From contig CAJFCJ010000003.1 in NCBI GenBank assembly GCA_904063045.1, positions 992,001 through 1,056,000 on the forward strand: 64,000 bases of DNA. The letters are read 5' to 3'. The DNA comes from Dimorphilus gyrociliatus. Lineage: Eukaryota > Animalia > Annelida. The notes beneath the pieces are model-generated. The model made no database searches and was not told the origin of the DNA. It was given only the letters and a program-made list of their open reading frames with translations. Every line of letters begins with the position of its first letter. The first letter of the stretch is position 1. Both the position numbers and the translations under genes were made by a program. Positions 10,601 through 36,265 of this stretch are shown here, in pieces.

Positions 10601-13534
10601 TAATTAGGATAAGCCTATCATTTATATACCTATTTGGTAATGTTATTGTCCTTTCTAACCTTGTTTTCTACTCTCTCCTCCACCCGTTCCAAAAAAACAG
10701 ATTTTAGACTCAACAGTGGATTCTATCAGATCTTTAAATCCCTAAATTAGACAAAATCCACCCAATATAGTATTTAATTAATCTATAATGTATAGATAAA
10801 AAGATTAGAGTTTATTTCAACAAATACAACTAAAGTTGCTGTATTTTTCAGTTATGTATTTTATTTATCTGTTCTGTAATATTGAAAAAAAGATTTCCTT
10901 TTCATGGAAAGATTCATTAAAATTTTTATAGACTTAAGTTAATCCTTTCATTTTTAAACTATCTAATTAATTATCATACTACTTTGGATTGTAATCTTAA
11001 TCCTCAATTCTCTTTCCCAGGGGCGATTTTAAAAAAAAATTTACAAGGCCATTCGAAATAAGGAAAAATACATTCTTTTGATGAATCTGTTATTCAGTTG
11101 TTCATTTTAAAAAGACCAATAACTGAGAAAGTAGAATGCTGTGTAGCTTATCACTTAAACGACTTGCCGTTCTATTAAAGTTCGCAAAACGTCAAATATT
11201 TCTTTAAATAAACGTTCAAGGCAAAATCTACAAAGTATATATGCTCTCATATTTACATATTTAAAAGAAAATTTTTGCTTATTGAATAACTAATATAATA
11301 TGAAAATTACATATGTACAGTATAGATATATACTTTGCATCGGCTGTGTCTCCTTATGAATATTGCAGAATGTAAGGAATAGAATCAATCTTCAAAGTTT
11401 AGACAATAAAACTAAATGGTTGGACCAATTCTCTATGGAATTAATGTAATATGGAATGATTTTGAAATAGACACGTCATTCATTACATATATTTATATGA
11501 ATTTGGTATTCGATACTATTCTAGGCATTAAACAATGGTAGCCAATTCACTGTTGTTAACATACATACAACTCTCTTAAATTGATGACAGCAAATCCACT
11601 AATAAGAGTACCGAGAAAAAATATTGATAAGATCATATCATCAGGTATAAATAAATTGTAAACAAAGGATTCTTACTACCGCGATTTTCTTCCTAGCATT
11701 ACATTTAACTTTTAATAACAAACCAAAGTAAAAGGGAATAAGATCATTTGCTACATTCAATTATTACTTCTTGATTCATGCTTCAATTCGAAGACAGTTA
11801 ATATGGTTTATCATTAATACTGCTCAATAAACTCTTGAACTCTTTCAAACCTTTTTATGAAAATAATAAGCTAATCAATATACTACTTAGTTGCTAATTT
11901 TTTTAAACAATAACGTTCACTTCGTTGATTAGCAAATTACTTCATCAGTGTGTTGAAATTGAATCCTTAGAGCAAGGAAATTAACTACTTTAGATCTAAG
12001 GCAGTTTTTCAGTAAAGATGTTACAAAAACGTGTATAAAATCCCTGAAATATTCATCTAAGTATACGCTAAGTAGACGAATACTACTGAAATAAACATGA
12101 ACTAATCGTCGTTAAGCAGATAATAATTTTTTTTTCAATAGGCCATATAATGTAAAAGTTTACCCTAATTTAACATTCAAATTTCAATAACTTATGAGTT
12201 CAATAAATCAATTTTAATCGATTCCTTCTAAAAGTTTAACAATAAATGGGTTCTTTGTATTTTATGTATTCAGTTTCTTATATTCAATACGCTATTAACA
12301 AAATAGAGATCTCTTTTCTTTGTTTGATATCGATATAAAAAATATTTAATAAATCATTTAAATGAATAATAACACTTTTTCTTTAATTTTTACCTTTTAC
12401 GCCCCAAAAATACCTTCTATTGATAAGATTTTATTGAATTATTACTATTTCTAGCGTAATAAAAGTACTAATAAACGTAGAAGTTGTAAAAATTCAACAA
12501 TAAATCTATAATCTATTTAAATGATCCATAATTTAAATTTCCTTTTATTCTAAGAGAAGTTTCTCACTCTAGAGATACACAGGGATAGATATATAGATAA
12601 AGAGAGTCTAACAATAGAAAATAAATTTATATATTAACTTATAAAGCATGTTGCAGATACGTATGAAAAAGATCAATCATTGATTAGCAAAAGATGAGAT
12701 AAAAGGATTGAGGTAACATTTGAAACTAACGATATGAAAAACTAAAAAGTCTTTCTAGGAAAAATAGCTTAAGGTTAATAAACTCATCAATCTATATTTC
12801 CTACCATATGAGATTAACCTAGATAGGTTTTCTAGCCATTTGATTAATGAATAAATAAATATGTCTTCATAGAAAGATGCTCTATTTCGTACGATGTGAG
12901 GACAATATATAATTCTTTTTATAGTTCTCACATAGGGAATAATTTCGTCTCTAAAAGAAAACAAGACTCTCTGTTACTCTAGTATTCAGACAAGACGATG
13001 TGATACAGTTTACTAAACCACAAACGTTTCTACGTTCGTTGGATAAAGATTCGCTGATAAACATCCCCCTGCAATATTTAGTATGACTTTTATATTTGAT
13101 TGACTAACAAATTAAGCACTTGTATAAAATCTTCACTTCCGTTTACACTAAATTTGGATATTTTTCTTGTATTATATATTTAAAAATAGCTGTTACACTG
13201 TCTAAAGTCCAAAATGGAATGATTATTAATTCATATTTCACTTTTGATTTCAATCTAAAAAGATTAGACAGCATTATATTGCAAAATTTAGCTATAGAAA
13301 CTTATAGAAATGACTGCTTATCTCTTAACAATTAGTATGTCATTTCTTTACATTAAGATAACTGTAGTAATCTGTAAGAGATTATACTTTATTAATTAAA
13401 TGTTTAATTATTTAAATTGATAAGAAAGATTATATTTTCATTGAGAAAAAAATCATATATAAATAGTAGTAGAAGCTTTAAATTCTTATTTACAAAGCTG
13501 AAAAGAGAGGACCGGAAGAGATTGAATTTTAAAA

Positions 13535-15471
13535 ATGAAAATTCTATTGATTTTCTCAGGTTTTGTACATTTAGTTGTAAATTGAATATTAATTTAATGT
13601 TTTTTTTTATTGTAGTTCTCTTATTTGTTGGACAAGCTCTTTCCAACTATGTTTGTCCTCGTGACGAATATTTGAAACCTGTTGATGGCGCGTTTGCTGA
13701 TCCTAATAATTGTGGAATCTTTTATCATTGTACAAACGGTACTGCCTACGCTCAACAATGCCCACCTGGTTTACATTTTACAATATTGAGAAAAAATTGT
13801 CAATTCTTTACTTGTGTTGATCCAAAAGATGCCGATTGCCCTGGAAACAATTCCGTAAACGATGCAGAGTTTAGACCATGTTCTGAAAGTACACCGGTCG
13901 CCCTCAATTCGGATCAAGCTTGTTACAGCAAGGATAATGAATGTCAAATCACAGTGAATGGAACTTTTCCGAATAAGAAAGATTGTAGACAATACTATCA
14001 TTGCGTAAATGGAATCGCTTGGCCTCAACAATGTCCCAATGGACACTACTTCAGTCCATCATTAAATGTAAGAGATTGTAATTCAAAGTTATGCGTTCCA
14101 CTGGAAGAAGCACAGTGCAGCATTAACGGTAATTGGTCAACTTGGTCTGAATGGGAACAATGCGAGCCATCATGTGGTGATGGTATTAGCATACGTCGAC
14201 GAAGCTGCACCAATCCTCCTCCTTCTAATGGAGGAGCAAACTGTGAAGGTAGCGAATACGACATCAAACCCTGTATTAGTGAACCTTGTAGACTCTTGTC
14301 TCAGCCATCTTTTATGGTTGCCCAAAGAAATCTTGACACATATTCACAGGGAATCATTCGTTGGAGTAAAGTATGGTATAATTTTCAAGATCTCTTTGAT
14401 CCCGAAAAGAATAGCTTAAATATTTCTGAGAGCGGGTTTTATATTTTATCATTGTCTGCCGCTTTAGCTTCACGCCAAGGAATTACATTTAGACAAACAA
14501 CCCCTCAAAATAATGGTCTATATAGGAGAGCTGATGGAAATAATATTTATGAAGAGGATATGATATCTCAAACAGGAATTCATTTTTTAACCCGACTTAG
14601 CTCACCATTAATTCGTCAAACTTCTTCTTCAACTCGCCTATTCAGCTCTTTAAATGGTAGAGAAACATCTTGGTCCGGTTTTAAATATGAATCAAATAAC
14701 GTTCTCTATGCGGGTACTCTTAGTTCCATAATCTATCCTTCAAAGTTACGTTTGGAGAGAATTGCCACAATTAGGGGCTTTTCCCAATCTGATAATAAGG
14801 AAGACTTTAAAACGTCAGAGGGTGGTTGGTATTACATTAATTTTGGAGTGGGTTTCTATCAAAATCGAATGGCCCAAATTGCTCTTCAAATTAACAATGA
14901 AGTTCAATTTAAGAAGACATTAATAAGATCACATACCAGTTACTCGACCCGTGACCAAGGATCTAGAGGATTAGTTGTAAGACTAAATTCATCGGATACC
15001 ATTGGTTTACGTTTCATCAGCGGTGTTATTTATTCCGGAAATAGCCTAGTAACATATCTAACAGCTTGCAAACTAAATAGTTCAGATGGCTCTCCTCTAT
15101 TATACGCCTATAGAAAAAATGACTTTTCGTCATCCCAATTCTCATCATTAACCTATAATACTACTGTTATTGATACTACAAATTCGTGGAATGGTGAATA
15201 TTATACCGCAAATATATCAGGCTTGTATCATGTCGATATCTCTATTGGTCTTCAGTCGAGAAAAGATGCTCATTTAAGAATATATGTAGACAATGAAGAA
15301 GTTTTATCACTCCTTCGTTATTCAAGGCTTCATTCAGGTATCGATACAATATCTAGAACAGGACTAGTTAAATTGAAAAGAGGCTCTAAATTGCAAATAA
15401 AAGCAAATGGTGATTTAGCAAGTGATAATAAAGAATTAATATCGATAACTATATTTCTAATATCGCAATGA
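13535..15471 (+). CDS. Copy A: secreted 2xCBM14 - TSP1 - 3x gC1q protein, 626 aa; join(13535..13559,13616..15471)
   Basis: Spliced signal peptide MKILLIFS|VLLFVGQALS with a 56-nt phase-1 intron. Two peritrophin-A-like Cys domains (C..FYHC..QQCPPGLHF), a TSP1 repeat (WSTWSEWEQCEPSCGDG..RRRSC), and three C1q-like segments (PSFMV..GFYILSL; GWYYINFG..SRGLVVRL; GLYHVDISI..SRTGLVKL). TATATAAA at 13456. Confidence 0.9.
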
Positions 15472-16420: not shown

Positions 16421-17256
16421 AATTTAAAGATATCCCTTCTTTAATGCTATCAAATAACGAATTGCTTTATTAAAAAAACTGTTTTGACAAGGTAAATAGT
16501 ATCTAAAACGGAATGGATAGAGCGCTTTCCATCCTACTTTTTACCTTATATAACAAGTCTTATCCATCGAATTAGCATAATCTAATTTATAATGTAAATT
16601 TAATGCTCTTATCATAAGATCTTACTTAATAAAACACGTTGATATTAATGCGCCTTATAGATAAATATCGAAAGTATAAAATCAGCAGAGTCCAACGTTC
16701 TATTAAATTTATAAATCTGTTGCAAAATTTTCTAATTCTTATTAAATCAACCACTGCAGCAATGAAAATAGCATATTATGAAAGATGTCCTGTAAAATTT
16801 GTATAGCCAATCATGAAGCAAATATTTATTATTAGATGGATAATCAAAATTGATTAGTCAGCAATAAAATGATAATATATGAAGTATAAGGAAAGAAAGA
16901 TGAACAATTGAACAATTACACTGGAAAGTGTATATGTAAAAAGACCTAAAAAGAGGATTAATCATACGGTGAAGAACTAGAACTACTAAGATAAATAAAA
17001 CACTTTTACCGTTTTTAAAAACAAGACTATCAATTGATAAACACTCTCACATGTAATTTAGAAACTGAATAAAAATCAGAAAATTCAAGCCTCACTGCTT
17101 AATTAGCATAAAAACGTATTACATTCTTATTAATATTCATAATTTTCTACCTGATCTTCATACTTTTTCTAAAATAGTATTTCTCTTGATCGATATTACA
17201 TATTAAGAAATATTCAAGTGTAGTACAGTTACGTACATTTCTCTTTAGAAGTTGCA

Positions 17257-17288
17257 TTATCTGCCTTATCGCTGCTATTTTATGATAA
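17257..17288. promoter_or_regulatory. Three GATAA cores upstream of copy B (mirrored upstream of D)
   Basis: TTATCT 17257, CTTATC 17265 and TGATAA 17283, about 80-110 bp upstream of TATAAA at 17367. The AT-rich background lowers significance. Confidence 0.35.
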
Positions 17289-17293
17289 CCTAA

Positions 17294-17299
<6 letters not shown>

Positions 17300-17335
<36 letters not shown>
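17300..17335. repeat. (AT)18 in the copy B promoter
   Basis: Seen directly; ends ~30 bp before the TATA box. Confidence 0.95.
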
Positions 17336-17338
<3 letters not shown>

Positions 17339-17401
17339 TCTGACAATCAACTACTCCGAAACATTTTATAAAGTGAGCTAAAAGAAGTAAAGACAAAAAA
17401 A

Positions 17402-19387
17402 ATGAAAATTCTTCTTTTAACCATTTTCGGTAAAGTATTTAATTAAATAAACATATGAACAATATTATCTAATAAAAAGTTAATGCTTATTCAATGTGTC
17501 TTTTTTATAACAGCGTTCCTTTCAATCGGTTTCTCTATTCAATTTCAATGTCCGTTAAATTCGGATTTACAACCAATTGATGGAGCATTTGCCGACCCAG
17601 AATTTTGTGGTGTATACTATCATTGTATAAGCGGTACTCCTTTCCCTCAACAATGCCCTCCAGGACTCTTTTTCACCGTTTCTCTAACCAACTGTGAATA
17701 CTCAACTTGTGTAGAACCTGAAGAAGCTGAATGTCCAGGTGGAAATTCTACACTTATCGTTAAGAATCAAGATTTTCGTCAATGTTCTACTGAACCTGAC
17801 GAGGTGATGTCTTTTGAAGAACCATGTTATATGAAGAATTCGGATTGTGATGGAAAAATGAATGGAACATATCCAAACAATAATGATTGTAGACAATATT
17901 ATCATTGTTATAATGGTCTTTCTTGGCCTCAGCAATGTCCAGATGGATATTTTTTCAGTCCATCATTAAATGTTCGAGATTGTACTACGAAAATGTGTGT
18001 AACAATTGAAGAATCCGAGTGTCCAATGCCAGGAGGATGGTCTGAATGGTCAAGTTGGTCGGATTGTGATCCATCCTGCGGTGATGGTCTTCGAACTCGT
18101 ACAAGGAGTTGTACAAATCCGCCACCAATGAATGGAGGCGAAGATTGTCCTGGAAATTCAGTTGATATAGATTTGTGCTTTAATCCACCTTGCGGTGTAG
18201 TCAAAGAGCCAGCATTTATGGTATCAATGACAAGTCTTGTATCTCTTTCTCGTGGTACTGTCAAGTGGCATCGAATAAATATTAATAATGGCAATCTTTT
18301 TAATGCTACAACAAATTCATTAAATGTTAAAGATAGAGGATTTTTCTTCAGTTCTATAACAGCAACGACACAAAGTTTAGGAGGTGTGTATTTTGTAGAC
18401 GAAGGATCGGGCATTTCTTCTGCTTTATACAAAAGAAAAGATCGTATTGATCTGCGAAATTCTGAAACGTTATCCAAATCGGGCACCTACTTTTTCTCAT
18501 CTCCTTCAAATAAAAAATATTTTCACGAAAATTCAGCCGCCAGTGTAGTTGGATCGGTATCAAGCAGTGATACAGCATGGACAGCATTCCGATATGAAAC
18601 AAATAATGCATTTTTTGTTTCAACAACTTCAGCATTTTTTGGGACTGAAAGAATGATACCATTCAATAGAATAGTATCGCTTCGTGGCTTTGCTATGGAT
18701 CCAAATAGACAACGATTAACTGTCTCAACTAAAGGTTGGTATTTTATAAATATTGGACTTGGATTTGAATCTAGGAGGGCCGCAAAAGCATCTTTTGTTA
18801 TTAATGATCTCAATAACAAACCCGGTTGTGAGATAGGGAGAAGTGATACTAGATATGTTGGTAACAATCAGGCATCAAGAGGATTTATAGTAGAACTAAA
18901 TCCTGATGATAAAATTGGTTTGAAGTTAATAGAAGGACGAGTGAGATCACTTCTTTTTTATACTTATATGACTGGATTTAAACTAAACGCAACTAGTGAT
19001 AGTCCCGCATTTTACGCTTATAGTAGTGTTAGTCAAAGTATAACAACGAGAAGGAAACTAGCATTTGACACAGTCGTTTTAGATGTGTCATCAGGATGGA
19101 GTACAATTGATAATACATACAAAGTGGCTGTATCAGGTCTCTACTATATTGAAATATCAGTGGGTGTGTTTCCTCAAAGTCAATCCGTTGTCGAAGTTGT
19201 GGTTAATAATGATGTAAAGTTGGGAATGCGTTATTTATCAACTGCACATAACGCGTATGATGTAAAAAGTAGAGGAGGTTTGCTTCAAGTTCAAGAAGGC
19301 GATTCAATTTCTATTGAAACTTCAAATCCCGCTTATAGTGATGAATTAAAATTGACTTCATTCACTTTGTTGTACGTTTCACCATAA
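17402..19387 (+). CDS. Copy B: secreted 2xCBM14 - TSP1 - 3x gC1q protein, 633 aa; join(17402..17429,17514..19387)
   Basis: Signal peptide MKILLLTIF|AFLSIGFS with an 84-nt phase-1 GTAAAG..CAG intron. Same domain order as copy A. TATAAA at 17367. Confidence 0.92.
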
Positions 19388-19696
19388 TATATAATCTGCT
19401 TAGGTCGTCATATTAAGTTGTGTATTATTTGATATTGTCAGATTCAAATTATTTAATTCATTATCTGAATCAATTGTATGTTTTGTTCGTAAAGATGTCG
19501 ATTCTAAAGGAAATTGAGATGTGGAAATTTTCTATTATCGCTTGATAACATACACTCTTTTTTGAACTATAGAAACTTTTAAACTATTTAATAGAATGCT
19601 CTCAGTATTATTGAAATTCTTCTATTTAACCAAAGTTGAGATGAAACCTTTTGATATAAGGACTATAAACTTTCGAAATACTGGAAATTTAAGAAA

Positions 19697-20525
19697 AGAA
19701 TTAACTTTAACGAATGCAATTTATTCAATGCTACGAGGAACTCAATCATTTTTAGAGATATAGAATTCTACTTTATGTGTCTTTCAAGAACAAACACAGG
19801 TGGAGGATATCTATATTTTACAGCAAATCAATCCTTTTCATATGGACTTACGAAACCAACAATGCTTTTTTTGTTGCTAGGACTTCGGGACAAGAGATTC
19901 CAGTCCTGCTTTCTTTTAGTCAAATTATAGCTCTTCGTAGTCTTAGTATTGATTGTAATCGACAGATGTTAACCGTCTGGACTAAAGGCTGGTACTCTAT
20001 AAGTATTGGAGTTGGATTTGTAACTAGAAGATTAACTAAACTTAGCATGGTGATTAATAATAATACTAGCAGGCCAGAATATGATTTAGGTATAGATTAT
20101 ACGAATCCAAGTAGCTATACTCAAGCATCCAGAGGATTCATTGTTGAGTTAGAGAGTTCTGACAAAATTGGTTTGAAATTGCTTGAGGGTCAAATAAGGT
20201 CACAGCATTTGTACATATATCTAACCGGATTCAAGCTAAATGCTACCAGTGACAGTCCTACATTTTATGCATACAGTAGCGTTAGTCAAACCATAACATC
20301 CAGAGGGCAAATAGCATATGATACAGTTGTCTTAGATACAACTTCATCATAGAGTTCAATAGATAATATATATAAAGTTGCTATATGAGGTCTCTACTAT
20401 ATTGATATGTCTGAAGGCATTATTCCCGGAACTCAATCAGTAGTAACTGTTTTGGTGAACAATTCTGTGAAAATGAGAATGCGTTTTTTGGAAACAGGAC
20501 AACGGTCTTATGGTATGCAGAGCAC
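19697..20525 (+). pseudogene. 5'-truncated pseudogene containing only C1q-domain sequence of the same family
   Basis: Begins RINFNECNLFNATRNS (cf. B RININNGNLFNATTNS). An internal deletion with frameshift near 19845 jumps to YETNNAFF..GWYSISIG..ASRGFIVEL. Premature stops at TAG 20350-20352 (W in B) and TGA ~20386 (S in B). Homology fades near 20525. No signal peptide, CBM14 or TSP1. Confidence 0.9.
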
Positions 20526-23012: not shown

Positions 23013-24417
23013 GGCGTTTATTACAGTTCACTTAGTTGTACTGTTCTTATATAGCTATTTTATCTGTTGGTAATGATTAGTAAACTTTTTTATCTTTGAC
23101 TACAGTATATAGTTAATAGAATGATATTATATATCTTTGAGGTCGTAGCCTTAATAAAGCTTATCCTTAAGTAATATTTTTCCATTTATCGTATATAAAG
23201 CCACTTAAATTGTTATTTTAACAATGTTGGTAGTTTTTGTTTTTGAATAATTATTTTTCAGGATGTGTTAAGAAATTTGCAACAATTTGTCAAGTGTGTT
23301 TGCTTAGCTGTGTGGTTTTTTCTAGAAGTAAGGTTGTTGACATGTAGTCATTCTGTACCTCTTATCACGTGTTATAGAGTTCCTCTCTCCTTTAGATTAT
23401 AATATAATAAATATAAAACTCAGTGATTAGCATTATTACTTAAGATTAGACGAAGAACTTATCTATTTCACAAGTTTCTGTACCAATTTCTGACACAAAA
23501 AATGTCATTTTATAGTTACATTTTCTTTTAATCTAATCAAAATTAAAAGTCAAGTCATTCAGGAAGGCATCTCTTGCTTTTTTTTGTAATTAACAATTAA
23601 CCAGAATTTTAAGTTTTCAATATAATAAATTACCAGTTTAACTTTAATTACCGGCCAAATGAATTGATTTCTAAGCAAAAAACTTAATTTTATCCAAATA
23701 GTTGGTCTAATAATACCCTTTTCCTAACTGTTTTTTCAAGTAGTCACGTTTAAATAAAACATCTCCTTTTAGAGAAGGGTTAGTATCATTTCCAAATCTT
23801 CTTCAATTTATATTTTGTCCTATCTATTTACTATACTTTTCAGTAAGGATTTAAAATCATTATCTAAACTTTCTTTACTTTTTAGATAGTAATTTAAATG
23901 TCTGTTACATCTTCTTCAATTACATAAATTTGTACTATAGTGTTCGGAACCAGAAAAAAAATTACACATTACGTTTTGTTCCCTTTTCATTATATTAACA
24001 TGACAATAGGCATCTAGGGCAGCAAGCTCTTTTTAGTTGTCTTAAATTGACCTACCAAAATAGTGCAGTAGTTCAAAATGACAGTTGTAGTTGTGGCGAT
24101 GAAAAAGCATTTCAGTTTTCAGTATTTCGGAAGTATATAGTCCTTATATCAAAAGGTTTCATTTCTCCACTTTGGTTAAATAGAAGAATTTCAATAATAC
24201 TGAGAGCATTCTATTAAATAGTTTAAAAGTTTCTATAGTTCAAAAAAGAGTGTATGTTATCAAGCGATAATAGAAAATTTCCACATCTCAATTTCCTTTA
24301 GAATCGACATCTTTACGAACAAAACATACAATTGATTCAGATAATGAATTAAATAATTTGAATCTGACAATATCAAATAATACACAACTTAATATGACGA
24401 CCTAAGCAGATTATATA

Positions 24418-26403
24418 TTATGGTGAAACGTACAACAAAGTGAATGAAGTCAATTTTAATTCATCACTATAAGCGGGATTTGAAGTTTCAATAGAAATTG
24501 AATCGCCTTCTTGAACTTGAAGCAAACCTCCTCTACTTTTTACATCATACGCGTTATGTGCAGTTGATAAATAACGCATTCCCAACTTTACATCATTATT
24601 AACCACAACTTCGACAACGGATTGACTTTGAGGAAACACACCCACTGATACATCAATATAGTAGAGACCAGATACAGCCACTTTGTATGTATTATCAATT
24701 GTACTCCATCCTGATGACACATCTAAAACGACTGTGTCAAATGCTAGTTTCCTTCTCGTTGTTATACTTTGACTAACACTACTATAAGCGTAAAATGCGG
24801 GACTATCACTAGTTGCGTTTAGTTTAAATCCAGTCATATAAGTATAAAAATGAAGTGATCTCACTCGTCCTTCTATTAACTTCAAACCAATTTTATCATC
24901 AGGATTTAGTTCTACTATAAATCCTCTTGATGCCTGATTGTTACCAACATATCTAGTATCACTTCTCCCTATCTCACAACCGGGTTTGTTATTGAGATCA
25001 TTAATAACAAAAGATGCTTTTGCGGCCCTCCTAGATTCAAATCCAAGTCCAATATTTATAAAATACCAACCTTTCGTTGAGACAGTTAATCGTTGTCTAT
25101 TTGGATCCATAGCAAAGCCACGAAGCGATACTATTCTATTGAATGGTATCATTCTTTCAGTCCCAAAAAATGCTGAAGTTGTTGAAACAAAAAATGCATT
25201 ATTTGTTTCATATCGGAATGCTGTCCATGCTGTATCACTGCTTGATACCGATCCAACTACACTGGCGGCTGTATTTTCGTGAAAAGTTTTTTTATTTAAA
25301 GAAGGTAAGAAAAGGTAAGTGCCCGATTTGGATAACGTTTCAGAATTTCGCAGATCAATACGATCTTTTCTTTTGTATAAAGCAGAAGAGATGCCCGATC
25401 CTTTGTCTTCAAAATACACACCTCCTAAACTTTGTGTCGTTGCTGTTATAGAACTGAAGAAAAATCCTCTATCTTTAACATTTAATGAATTTGTTGTAGC
25501 ATTAAAAAGATTGCCATTATTAATATTTATTCGATGCCACTTGACAGTACCACGAGAAAGAGATACAAGACTTGTCATTGATACCATAAATGCTGGCTCT
25601 TTGACTACACCGCAAGGTGGATTAAAGCACAAATCTATATCAACTGAATTTCCGGGACAATCTTCGCCTCCATTCATTGGTGGCGGATTTGTACAACTCC
25701 TTGTACGAGTTCGAAGACCATCACCGCAGGATGGATCACAATCCGACCAACTTGACCATTCAGACCATCCTCCTGGCATTGGACACTCGGATTCTTCAAT
25801 TGTTACACACATTTTCGTAGTACAATCTCGAACATTTAATGATGGACTGAAAAAATATCCATCTGGACATTGCTGAGGCCAAGAAAGACCATTATAACAA
25901 TGATAATATTGTCTACAATCATTATTGTTTGGATATGTTCCATTCATTTTTCCATCACAATCCGAATTCTTCGTATAACATGGTTCTTCAAAAGACATCA
26001 CCTCGTCAGGTACAGTAGAACATTGACGAAAATCTTGATTCTTAACGATAAGTGTAGAATTTCCACCTGGACATTCAGCTTCTTCAGGTTCTACACAAGT
26101 TGAGTATTCACAGTTGGTTAGAGAAACGGTGAAAAAGAGTCCTGGAGGGCATTGTTGAGGGAAAGGAGTACCGCTTATACAATGATAGTATACACCACAA
26201 AATTCTGGGTCGGCAAATGCTCCATCAATTGGTTGTAAATCCGAATTTAACGGACATTGAAATTGAATAGAGAAACCGATTGAAAGGAACGCTGTTATAA
26301 AAAAGACACATTGAATAAGCATTAACTTTTTATTAGATAATATTGTTCATATGTTTATTTAATTAAATACTTTACCGAAAATGGTTAAAAGAAGAATTTT
26401 CAT
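24418..26403 (-). CDS. Copy D: secreted 2xCBM14 - TSP1 - 3x gC1q protein, 633 aa; complement(join(24418..26291,26376..26403))
   Basis: Inverted near-duplicate of B with the same exon structure; 14 amino-acid differences. TATAAA at 26433..26438. Confidence 0.92.
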
Positions 26404-26466
26404 TTTTTTTGTCTTTACTTCTTTTAGCTCACTTTATAAAATGTTTCGGAGTAGTTGATTGTCAGA

Positions 26467-26469
<3 letters not shown>

Positions 26470-26501
<32 letters not shown>
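26470..26501. repeat. (AT)16 in the copy D promoter
   Basis: Paralogous to the (AT)18 of copy B, two units shorter. Confidence 0.95.
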
Positions 26502-26507
<6 letters not shown>

Positions 26508-28546
26508 TTAGGTTATCATAAAATAGCAGCGATAAGGCAGATAATGCAACTTCTAAAGAGAAATGTACGTAACTGTACTACACTTGAATATTTCTTAATA
26601 TGTTGAACATTAGATTTTCTCTTGAGAGAGTTTGCTTTTTATATATACAATATATATACGTATGCATACATATATGCAGTATATATATATATATTTTTTA
26701 ATAAATTAATTAAACTACTATTTATCATCATGAGCTTCAAATACTCCTTATTTATTGACCTTTTTTTATCAATAATCTAAAGATTATAAACATTTTATTA
26801 AGTTCTTTGAGGTTGCGACCTCTGAATCATTCATGATTATAATATACTTAGGTCGCTTTCTTTCATGTGATTGCTATAGACCCATTTCGAGTTCAAGTAA
26901 TTTAGTTTGATTATCTCCTTCGATAACAAAAACTAACGATATATATTTTTTGACGCCGAAATAATTGGTTAACTATTTTTGATTTATTCCTTGATAATAG
27001 TAAAGGAATTTCCAGATTTTTTGACATCTCTGTTTCTCTTATGACAGACCACTTTCAGTATCTGAAATTAGCGACAGCTAATATAATTTCATATATAAAG
27101 AAAGATAATGCAATTGCATCTTGATCATTTATAGAAAACGATTCCATTCTCTTCAGGAAAATGTAATAAAATGAAAGAAACACGAAAAATTGAAACTTTT
27201 AACTTAATGACTATCAAAAAGATTTTATTCATTCATTATTAAAATTGTTTGAAATATAGATGAGCAGTTTGAATTTCTTTCAGATATTCTTTTAGGAGAA
27301 AAGAACAGTTTCACCAAGGAGATACATTTTAAGTGGCGTATTTTTCATTCAGCCAGCTTTTTTCAAAAAGCTTCTTTAGAGAGTTGTTTTAATGTAATTT
27401 GAACTAACTAATGTTAACATCCCTATATATTCATATAGTTAAAGACATTTCAACGGTAGTTGGCAAAGTTAAAACTACTTTTCAAACATAAACAATTTGT
27501 CATTTAATTTTCCATCTTGTTGTTTCAAAATCTGTTTCCATACTCCTTCTATCTTATCTCAATCGTTGACCTTTTTATGTTTATTTATAGTGTTTTCTCA
27601 ATGCATAGAGAATTATAAAAATACTTTATTATTAATAAAAAAATTAGATGACCGTAATTAAACTATGGCAATTTCTGTCACAAGTTACCACTTTCTTCCT
27701 GTCTCCTACGCACTGTATCTCTTTCTCTCTTCATTTGTCTCTGTCTCTCTGTCTTTCTTTCTGCTGTGAGACCTACCATATGCGTAATATTTCTGTCCTG
27801 TTTTTATTATACTTATTTATACCTTTTTCGAACCTGATTCAATACAAACTAGTATATTATCGATACAATTTAAATATTCATTTTGAACGAGTATTTTCTC
27901 TTCTTCGAACGAAAAATTCATAAATATACTAATTTAATTCATATTGATAGTTAATTAAACAAAGTTAAACTACTCAATTTCGTATGCCCTATTTGTCCTT
28001 TTAAATATTATCTTTATGTATTTTTGATATGGACTGACTCTTTCAAAGTTTAAAAAAATTGGCTAATGTCGCATATGGTTTTTTCTCTTAATACTAAATT
28101 TAATATGGCTATTTTTAGATACAAACAAATGCTAACTAATAAGAGGAAGGGACATATTTTAAATAAGATATAAATATAATAATACGTTTGTATAAGAAAT
28201 CAATAAAAGCAATAAATTGACAAACATTTTCATTAGCATTCCTATGCTGTTTATAAATTTATATTTACATACATAAGAAGACTGATAGAGGGTTGAAGTT
28301 TATGTAACACATATGAAAATCTTATTCATTTTTTATACAAATCAAGTACGAAAAGTATACGATACAGTGTAAGGCCATATAATAATTTTTAGCAAAGCAT
28401 AGGCGGATATCTGGGAACTTTATGATATGTTACATATGGAAAATTTAACAGAAATATATATTTACAACTAAATATAAACATTTCAGAGAGTATATAAGCT
28501 GAAAAATTTTATTGAGAGACAGTCCGATCTTGACTGAATAATAAAG

Positions 28547-34339: not shown

Positions 34340-36265
34340 TTAACTTGATACGATAAACATTGTTAGAGAAATAACTCTTCTATTATTACTATTTAAGCCA
34401 TCTGTAGCTTTAATTTGAACTCTATCTTTTTCCTTCAAATTCAATAGACCAGACCTTGACATAGTATCAAAGTTATTATGCAAATTCGAAGTACGTACTA
34501 GTGAAAGTCTCCTTTGTCCATTGACATGAATTTCTAAATTAAGTCTTGTATTTGGTGAGCTTCCAGCGTTTACTTCTATAAAATATAAGCCAGAGTATTC
34601 AATTTCGTATTCGCTGGTTGAACTATGCCATATATTTCCATTGTTAAAAACCACATCATCGTATGAAACATTTGATAGAGATGAGCTAAAAAAATCCCCA
34701 GAACGGCGTACGTAGAGAACGGGCGTGAAAAACGTAGTATTCAATTTCATTGCCGTCATATACGTATATAAATTATTTGTTGACCTAATAGCACCAGACA
34801 ATAAGCGAAGACCTATGACGTCATTTGCTTCCAAGAAAACGACTCCACCCCTTGACGCTTGGTCATTTTGGAAGTTGTTCGATTGGCTTCTGCTTAATGA
34901 GAAATTAGTTTGTGGCTCGTTATTAATAGTCAGTACTACATCTGACGTTGTTCTAGCTTCAAAGCCAGTTCCGATATTGATATAATACCATCCACTATCA
35001 GCAACTCTATAGGAATAAGAATTAGGAACGGGTGCAGCCCCTCTTAGAACGATTATTTCTTGCAATCTGATATCTCCTGGATTATTTTCATTAAGTGAAC
35101 TACCGCAAAATAGTAAATTTCTCGATTCGTATCTAAAAGCTAACCAAGATGTTTCGTAGCCATCCTCTCTACTAAAAATAGGAGTGCTAAAAGTTTCAAA
35201 TTCAGCGTAGGGATTAAATAATCTATTCAGAGAAAATATGCCACTTCTCGAAAATGTATCCACTCCATTAAAAGATGATCCAGTTTGTCTAAAGAGTGCC
35301 GATAGTCTGCCGGTACCTTGTAGTGAAGAGTGATATCCATTTCCTGTGCTTGATCCTCCACTTAACGACATGTAATAAAAGCCATTTTCTTCAACCTTCA
35401 TTTCTGAATTGGATGGATTATATAGGTCCTTATTGTTAATTACAACAGAATTCCATATCATTTTTCCAGGAAGTAGAAAGGGAGAATTTCTATAACCAAC
35501 AAAAAAGGCTGGACTAGAACCAAAAGTACAATTTCTACTTTGACAGACTTCTATATCTGTTGACGATCCAGGGCATTTTGCACCGCCATTGGCTGGTGGA
35601 GGATTGTTACAACTTCTTTCTCGTATTCTGATACCAGTTCCACATTCTGGTTCGCAAGGGCTCCAACTCGACCACGAACTCCAGGAACCACCAGTTGGAC
35701 ATGCGGCATTTTCAAGCGGAACACATATCCTTCTATCGCAATTCCTAGTATTCAAGCTAGGATTAAAGAAAAAACCAGAAGGACATTTTTCAGCATACAC
35801 TCTATCAGAAAAACAATGAAAGTATTGAGTACAATCCGTATTATTAGCAAAAGTTCCATTTTGTTGACAAGTTTCGTAGGACTCTTCTGAAGCTTTGGCA
35901 TCGAAATCATTGAAAAATTTAACTTCATTTTCCTCAGATTGATTATAGCTTGGACAATTCGATTCGGCGGGCGAAGTACACATAGTAAAATGACAATCCT
36001 TATGAGCAATTGTAAAGTGAAGACCGGGAGGACACTGCCTTAGGTGAAACGTACCGTTGATACAATGATAATAATTATTACAATTTATTGGATCGATAAA
36101 AGCTCCATCGATATAATTAAAATCATCATCAGTTGGGCAAGAAAACTGCGACAAGGCTCCGTGCAAGAGGATAAAAGCTAATATTAAAATAACATTAGGA
36201 TTAATACAGAATTAAAGATTATATAAATAAAACTTACCGAAAGTCAAAAGGATAAGACCCTTCAT
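34340..36265 (-). CDS. Copy E: secreted 2xCBM14 - TSP1 - 3x gC1q protein, 621 aa; complement(join(34340..36177,36238..36265))
   Basis: Signal peptide MKGLILLTF|AFILLHGALS with a 60-nt phase-1 GTAAG..TAG intron. Same domain order, but a divergent paralogue. TATAAAT at 36305..36311. Confidence 0.92.

Follow-up and report, generated by a model that had tools for sequence, protein, structure and literature searches.

An island of divergence between the near-identical arms of an inverted C1q gene duplication in Dimorphilus gyrociliatus

In the ampliconic palindromes of primate Y chromosomes, gene conversion takes place from arm to arm. The pair of annelid genes described here, B and D, shares with those palindromes the inverted arms, the unique spacer, an identity of about 99% or higher that continues into non-coding sequence, and an arm edge that has decayed beside the spacer. 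It differs from them in scale, as the primate arms measure from tens of kb to Mb and those of B and D 2.5 kb, and in that an internal island of divergence, such as the one reported below, is atypical of the primate palindromes.

Islands of this kind are described for other duplicates under gene conversion, with the name of 'peak of divergence', in exon 5 of the red/green opsins and in RHCE/RHD (PMC3924837); the theory is that of Innan and of Teshima & Innan (reviewed in PMC3924837), and the published reading of the peak is that selection restricts conversion around functionally important differences (PMC3924837). As in B and D, the coding and non-coding sequences of these duplicates are near-identical while a short internal segment is much more diverged, linked silent sites are included, and the peak is centred on amino-acid differences. 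The opsins and RHCE/RHD are tandem genes; B and D, which are known from one assembly, lie instead in inverted orientation, as arms of a small palindrome.

At the level of the proteins, the C1qDC genes of the oyster and other bivalves have expanded by local duplication, are secreted, and in some cases have three C1q domains (PMC6835236), with positively selected sites that concentrate in the C-terminal part of the domain (PMC6835236); the term gene conversion has zero occurrences in that paper (PMC6835236). The family of B and D resembles them in its large lineage-specific expansion and in having few localised fast sites on a purifying background, although it is an annelid family and, unlike the bivalve C1qDC, has an N-terminal module of two CBM14 domains followed by TSP1. 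A further likeness is to the engineered gC1q/TNF trimers, in which three jelly rolls are joined in a single chain and assemble into one head, as in the model of B presented below. However, 4DOU, 5HKJ, 5KCA and 4ZCH (APRIL-BAFF-BAFF) are laboratory chain fusions, whereas the head of B is predicted to be a natural one, and the three domains of B, unlike those of the engineered trimers, are strongly diverged, with Pfam recognising mainly the third.

The Dimorphilus gyrociliatus genome has been published as a haploid PacBio assembly of ~78 Mb in about 350 scaffolds (PMC7854359), of the early PacBio type (PBcR, Quiver, Pilon) and made from the DNA of pooled animals (PMC7854359). The whole-genome searches reported here covered 77,897,245 bases in 349 contigs. 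The window, that is, the whole stretch of DNA that was analysed, has a length of 64 kb (C3:992001-1056000) and is AT-rich (GC 26-40%); positions are counted from its first letter. It contains five intronless C1q paralogues, A to E:

13417-15471, forward strand: gene A, an intronless paralogue
17483-19387, forward strand: gene B, 634 aa, intronless, with two CBM14 domains, one TSP1 and three C1q jelly rolls
21034 to about 22940, reverse strand: gene C, in the spacer of the palindrome, a conversion mosaic
24418-26322, reverse strand: gene D, the inverted twin of B, with a CDS identity of 98.95%
34340-36166, reverse strand: gene E, an intronless paralogue

The N-terminus of gene B is signal-peptide-like. 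Against Pfam, the protein matches the chitin-binding CBM14 domain twice, TSP1 once, and C1q, the last (PF00386) with E=2e-16 and 60.8 bits against a cut-off of 23.7, its best stretch being residues 509-623, which is the third domain. The triple-C1q part has more than 100 matches in the species' own 78-Mb genome, and the sample used in the paralogue comparisons (loci L006-L052) comprises about half of these. Many copies of the family are found on small contigs, often as inverted pairs.

The coding sequences of B and D are both 1905 nt long (634 codons), have zero indels between them and differ at exactly 20 positions, which are distributed very unevenly. The initial annotation had pointed to 12 of some 20 differences falling within 138 bp, and to ten of them being non-synonymous and changing nine residues; the exact count is 12 of 20, at the positions indicated, and the ten changes in nine residues were confirmed. 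This island, or patch, occupies the following places:

18396-18533, forward strand: the island in B, 138 bp, codons 305-351
25272-25409, reverse strand: the same island in D, as the inverted copy

In the coordinates of B, the differences are at 18396, 18401, 18415, 18487, 18491, 18498, 18500, 18503, 18507, 18518, 18519 and 18533, those at 18415 and 18487 being the synonymous ones, and the residues altered from B to D are V305E, E307K, F337L, S339L, S340P, P341S, S342L, Y346T (a two-base change) and S351T. They form two sub-clusters, one of three differences (18396-18415) and another of nine in 47 bp (18487-18533), with 72 bp between them; outside, the nearest differences between B and D are at 18151 and 18730, so that the island extends over about 580 bp at most. 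When 20 differences were placed at random on the CDS, none of 100,000 placements gave at least 12 in any 138-bp window, nor did any of 100,000 give at least nine in any 47-bp window, which is far beyond chance, these lengths having been picked after the data were seen and the margin being very large. The description of the same stretch as barely alignable among the other paralogues was, in contrast, overstated, since the family has anchors in G334, L338, L342 and P345. Nor does the variability of the nine changed sites across the family exceed that of random sites (entropy 2.44 vs 2.23, p=0.25), and family-wide variability is higher in other segments, such as 443-462.

As regards the structure, AlphaFold2 was applied to residues 238-634 of B (window 18194-19384) with an alignment of 42 paralogues, the model number being the residue number minus 237. 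For both B and D the pLDDT is 92.4 and the pTM 0.92, and the secondary structure is essentially the same in the two, with strand E starting one residue later in D. At full length, Foldseek matches the model to the single-chain trimers 4DOU (adiponectin), 5HKJ (C1q) and 5KCA (Cbln1) with a TM of 0.83-0.84; the ESM Atlas gave no usable match. This full-length match to engineered single-chain trimers leads to the confident prediction that the three C1q domains of the tandem array together make up one natural single-chain pseudo-trimeric head, in B as well as in the corresponding region of D, C, A and E. Residues 305-351 of the patch are residues 68-114 of the model, in the first C1q domain, where the changed ones have the numbers 68, 70, 100, 102-105, 109 and 114 and are situated as follows:

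V305 and E307: end of strand D (model 65-70)
F337: end of strand F (model 90-101)
S339-S342: F-G turn (model 102-106), in a 10-residue block of lower pLDDT (B 81, D 78)
Y346: strand G (model 107-112)
S351: immediately past strand G

According to the model, the changed residues are on a surface hairpin of domain 1. In the canonical C1q/TNF topology, strands A'AHCF make up the inner sheet and B'BGDE the outer one, and both termini lie at the base; the apical loops serve C1q and cerebellin, and the determinants of the D-E loop serve the TNF ligands. As strands D and G are adjacent in the outer sheet, the two sub-clusters would form one surface patch, which, judging from the secondary structure and the canonical topology, would lie on the basal face of domain 1, close to the TSP1 linker. 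The hairpin would then occupy the region of the D-E loop determinants of the TNF ligands, opposite the apical loops of C1q and cerebellin. The CDR-like ligand-contact loop of the initial annotation is a plausible but putative reading of this hairpin.

It could be argued that the patch is an artefact of assembly or polishing, in which errors or mixed alleles came to be written into one arm of a near-identical repeat, given that polishing errors occur in repeats and that this is an early PacBio assembly from pooled animals (PMC7854359). This is highly improbable, firstly, because the 12 differences are all substitutions that leave the reading frame intact and both copies are free of indels and stops, which does not match the error profiles of PacBio; secondly, because both versions yield the same confident fold; and finally, because 12 differences let short reads map uniquely there.

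With the site counts of Nei and Gojobori, the patch and the rest of the gene compare in the following way:

Patch, codons 305-351: synonymous 2/32, non-synonymous 10/109, omega 1.5
Rest of the B/D gene: synonymous 3/387, non-synonymous 5/1374, omega 0.47

These ratios bear on the possibility that recent positive (diversifying) selection alone has produced the patch, B and D being uniformly young, with the same conversion history throughout, and a ligand-contact hairpin being the target. The ten non-synonymous changes to two synonymous, and the eight to none in codons 337-351, are in its favour, as is the position of the changes on a surface hairpin with the predicted fold unaltered; moreover, there are oyster C1q genes with episodic positive selection at few sites (PMC6835236). 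However, the omega of the patch is not above 1 (binomial p=0.47), and in codons 337-351, where omega is undefined, the departure from neutrality has p=0.18. Furthermore, in a uniformly young pair under pure positive selection dN alone should rise, whereas in the patch the silent divergence is also raised: 2/32 synonymous sites, compared with 3/387 elsewhere in the gene (p=0.049) or with 3/917 when the non-coding flanks are included (Fisher p=0.010). This corresponds to a dS of 0.065 in the patch against 0.008 elsewhere, an 8- to 20-fold increase that consists of two changes only, each of them 4-14 bp from non-synonymous ones, with which they may form multi-base events; the elevation of neutral divergence in the patch is suggestive rather than firm. 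In two other young inverted pairs, L046/L047 (nine differences) and L050/L051 (six), the excess in this segment is not significant, 4 of the 15 differences being in residues 292-362 (p=0.30), with each pair changed at 349 or 351; the maximum of divergence does, however, lie in this segment between B and C and in L008/L016. Thus, with omega not above 1 and the silent divergence also increased, selection alone does not explain the patch, and as a complete account it is quite unlikely. The other paralogues, at below 70% aa identity, are too diverged for site models of dN/dS. Purifying selection is indicated for this segment in two further paralogue pairs (L038/L041), where its omega is 0-0.4, and the 10:2 ratio of B and D is above the expectation for an omega of 0.2-0.3 (p=0.003-0.02); therefore, the constraint has been either relaxed or reversed in the patch of B and D.

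The edges of the inverted repeat provide a second measure of its age. Its parts are:

17198-19690, forward strand: left arm, about 2.49 kb, ending sharply on its outer side at 17198
24113-26603, reverse strand: right arm, with a sharp outer boundary at 26603
19637-19690 and 24113-24168: decayed inner (spacer-side) edge, with 6 substitutions and a 2-bp indel in 54 bp, about 89% identity

In the 5′ flank (17198-17482, 285 bp) the sole difference between B and D is a 4-bp indel in an AT repeat, and the 3′ flank, for which some 250 bp of identical non-coding sequence had been claimed, does contain 249 bp (19388-19636) without a difference. The inner edge that follows departs sharply from these adjacent 249 bp (Fisher p=2.5e-5) and is indistinguishable from the patch (p=0.59) and from its silent sites (p=0.70), the counts being small. 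An inner edge as diverged as the patch, beside an identical flank, argues for an old duplication, and against the uniformly young pair that selection alone would need; the simplest reading dates the duplication to roughly 0.07-0.11 substitutions per site, with later homogenisation of the arms everywhere but at the edge and in the patch.

In our opinion, it is on balance probable that B and D are an old inverted duplication which conversion has homogenised, and in which the patch is an unconverted island. Under this explanation the two genes would be the arms of the old duplication, and intrachromosomal gene conversion would hold both coding and flanking sequence near-identical, while the 138-bp core would have gone unconverted for much longer and so would retain an older divergence, in a segment that is predicted to code for a surface hairpin of domain 1, with the ends of strands D and F, the turn between F and G, and the beginning of strand G. 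The persistence of the island could have followed two routes: (i) converted variants would have been selected against, if the copies differ in their binding surface; (ii) the dense mismatches (9 in 47 bp) could themselves block the formation of heteroduplexes. Most likely one or both of these routes would have operated, selection being the putative cause in the first of them; a chance gap between conversion tracts, or a blockage driven by mismatches, would look the same as an island kept by selection.

That conversion is active in the cluster can be seen in gene C, which is about 100% identical to B and D at 17575-18175 and at about 19000-19387, and 40-70% identical between these stretches. 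Its least similar window to B is codons 300-345, with 41% nt identity, which is the same segment as the patch. Outside the patch, C carries the state of B at 17793, 17832, 19135, 19153 and 19154, and that of D at 18151; with C matching B at five of the six informative differences, the most recent exchange of C with B appears to postdate the last homogenisation of B with D. Of the two readings of the initial annotation, protection from homogenisation is thus the better fit, in view of the raised silent divergence, the equally old arm edge and the active conversion in the cluster, whereas diversifying selection fits less well, with an omega of 1.5 at p=0.47.

The mosaic of gene C also lends some credit to a different explanation, in which the patch would be an imported tract, a single short conversion, about 140-580 bp long, having carried it into B or D from a third copy with about 9% divergence (a paralogue since lost, an unassembled copy or a divergent allele). 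A tract of this length is compatible with one such event, and the rise in both dS and dN would also be expected. Nevertheless, neither version of the patch has a third copy in the 77.9-Mb assembly, where queries of 341 bp and 66 bp matched only B and D, and at the homologous positions of 44 paralogue loci (236 kb) there are no variant-specific k-mers, the matches elsewhere being due to chance. The next-closest paralogue is only about 41% identical in the patch, and, by codon comparison, the neighbours A, C and E carry neither version. One more potential donor was considered in the spacer:

19694-20523 (19694-19834 and 19843-20523), forward strand: pseudogene fragment with stops, which starts 4 bp past the arm end

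This fragment matches residues 263-309 of B and then 366-596, and is rejected as a donor because it is without about residues 310-365 and has only about 43% identity before them. Its internal deletion removes nearly the same segment as the patch of B and D. Since the decayed arm edge already marks an old duplication, a donor becomes unnecessary, and the imported tract is unlikely.

The spectrum of the patch comprises six T/C transitions, in both directions, four changes of T to A or G to A, and one dinucleotide change. Nine differences in 47 bp, with the six T/C transitions in a pyrimidine-rich run and a dinucleotide change, could suggest a mutational cluster, left in one copy by one error-prone repair or template-switch event, possibly during conversion. 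Against such an event are the two directions of the transitions, the division of the cluster into two parts 72 bp apart, and two negative results, as no direct or inverted template of at least 12 nt exists in the window for a local template switch, and, for a compensated frameshift, a gapped alignment is no better than plain substitutions. Neither does the patch resemble templated hypermutation of the DGR type, which is rejected on the grounds that there is no third copy of the tract and that the variable positions are A in 4 of 12 cases in D and 1 of 12 in B.

The comparison with the rest of the family also bears on a burst in a single copy. Among 40 other members, 25 have L at position 342, the residue of D, and 17 have Y at 346, the residue of B, while at 340 the family has T, S or N, which is nearer to B. 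This points to derived states in the patches of both B and D, and changes on both lineages speak against a single-lineage burst; a clustered mutation is very unlikely. In addition, B and D share an inserted residue at 339 and have K at 345, a position occupied by P in 34 of 40 members, from which the hairpin would have been remodelled already in the common ancestor of B and D.

The segment recurs as the least conserved part of other comparisons. The lowest-identity window of 46 codons is 300-355 between B and D (93% nt), 300-345 between B and C (41%), and 310-355 (69% nt) in L008/L016, an unrelated pair on other contigs, in which residues 292-362 are peaks both of pS (0.42, 0.30) and of pN (0.28, 0.21), most other bins having a pS of ~0.1. 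L008 (C106:48863-50047) and L016 (C46:278533-279714) make up a conversion-type mosaic, with a C-terminal domain that is 92-99% identical and, in residues 401-440, a pN of 0.25 against a pS of 0.11; contigs C106 and C46 have several matching family fragments in common, and may be haplotigs or a segmental duplication. In the inverted pairs L013/L014 (C65, at about 20.7 kb and 27.5 kb) and L039/L040 (C74, at about 58.3 kb and 77.0 kb) the CDS are 100% identical, a further sign of conversion in the family, although these are either fully homogenised palindromes or assembly duplications. Two further copies, L026 (C74:54179-55339) and L027 (C7:4618820-4619932), have 99.7% identity over about 1 kb, with a frame difference from about residue 343 and internal stops, as would be expected of recently duplicated or transposed pseudogene copies.

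In summary, the pattern of B and D is the known signature of a 'peak of divergence', and a new example of it, in which adaptive evolution is not proven. As it stands, this is a clean case of a well-described population-genetic signature, with no new mechanism, and one in which the sequence identity between B and D misdates the duplication.

If selection keeps the island, it would single out, ahead of any experiment, the few residues by which two secreted C1q receptors, identical in all else, differ in function, and binding and swap experiments in a large invertebrate recognition family would have a precise target. A wider reading, which we hold to be rather unlikely, is that throughout the family conversion would spread a constant scaffold while selection would repeatedly shield a specificity surface of roughly 50 codons, and that the more than 100 copies would be natural single-chain C1q pseudo-trimers on chitin-binding modules, with that surface made up of the last part of strand D, the F-G turn and the first part of strand G. 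If this were true, a miniature annelid would possess a germline-encoded recognition repertoire built on a constant frame and a protected variable patch.
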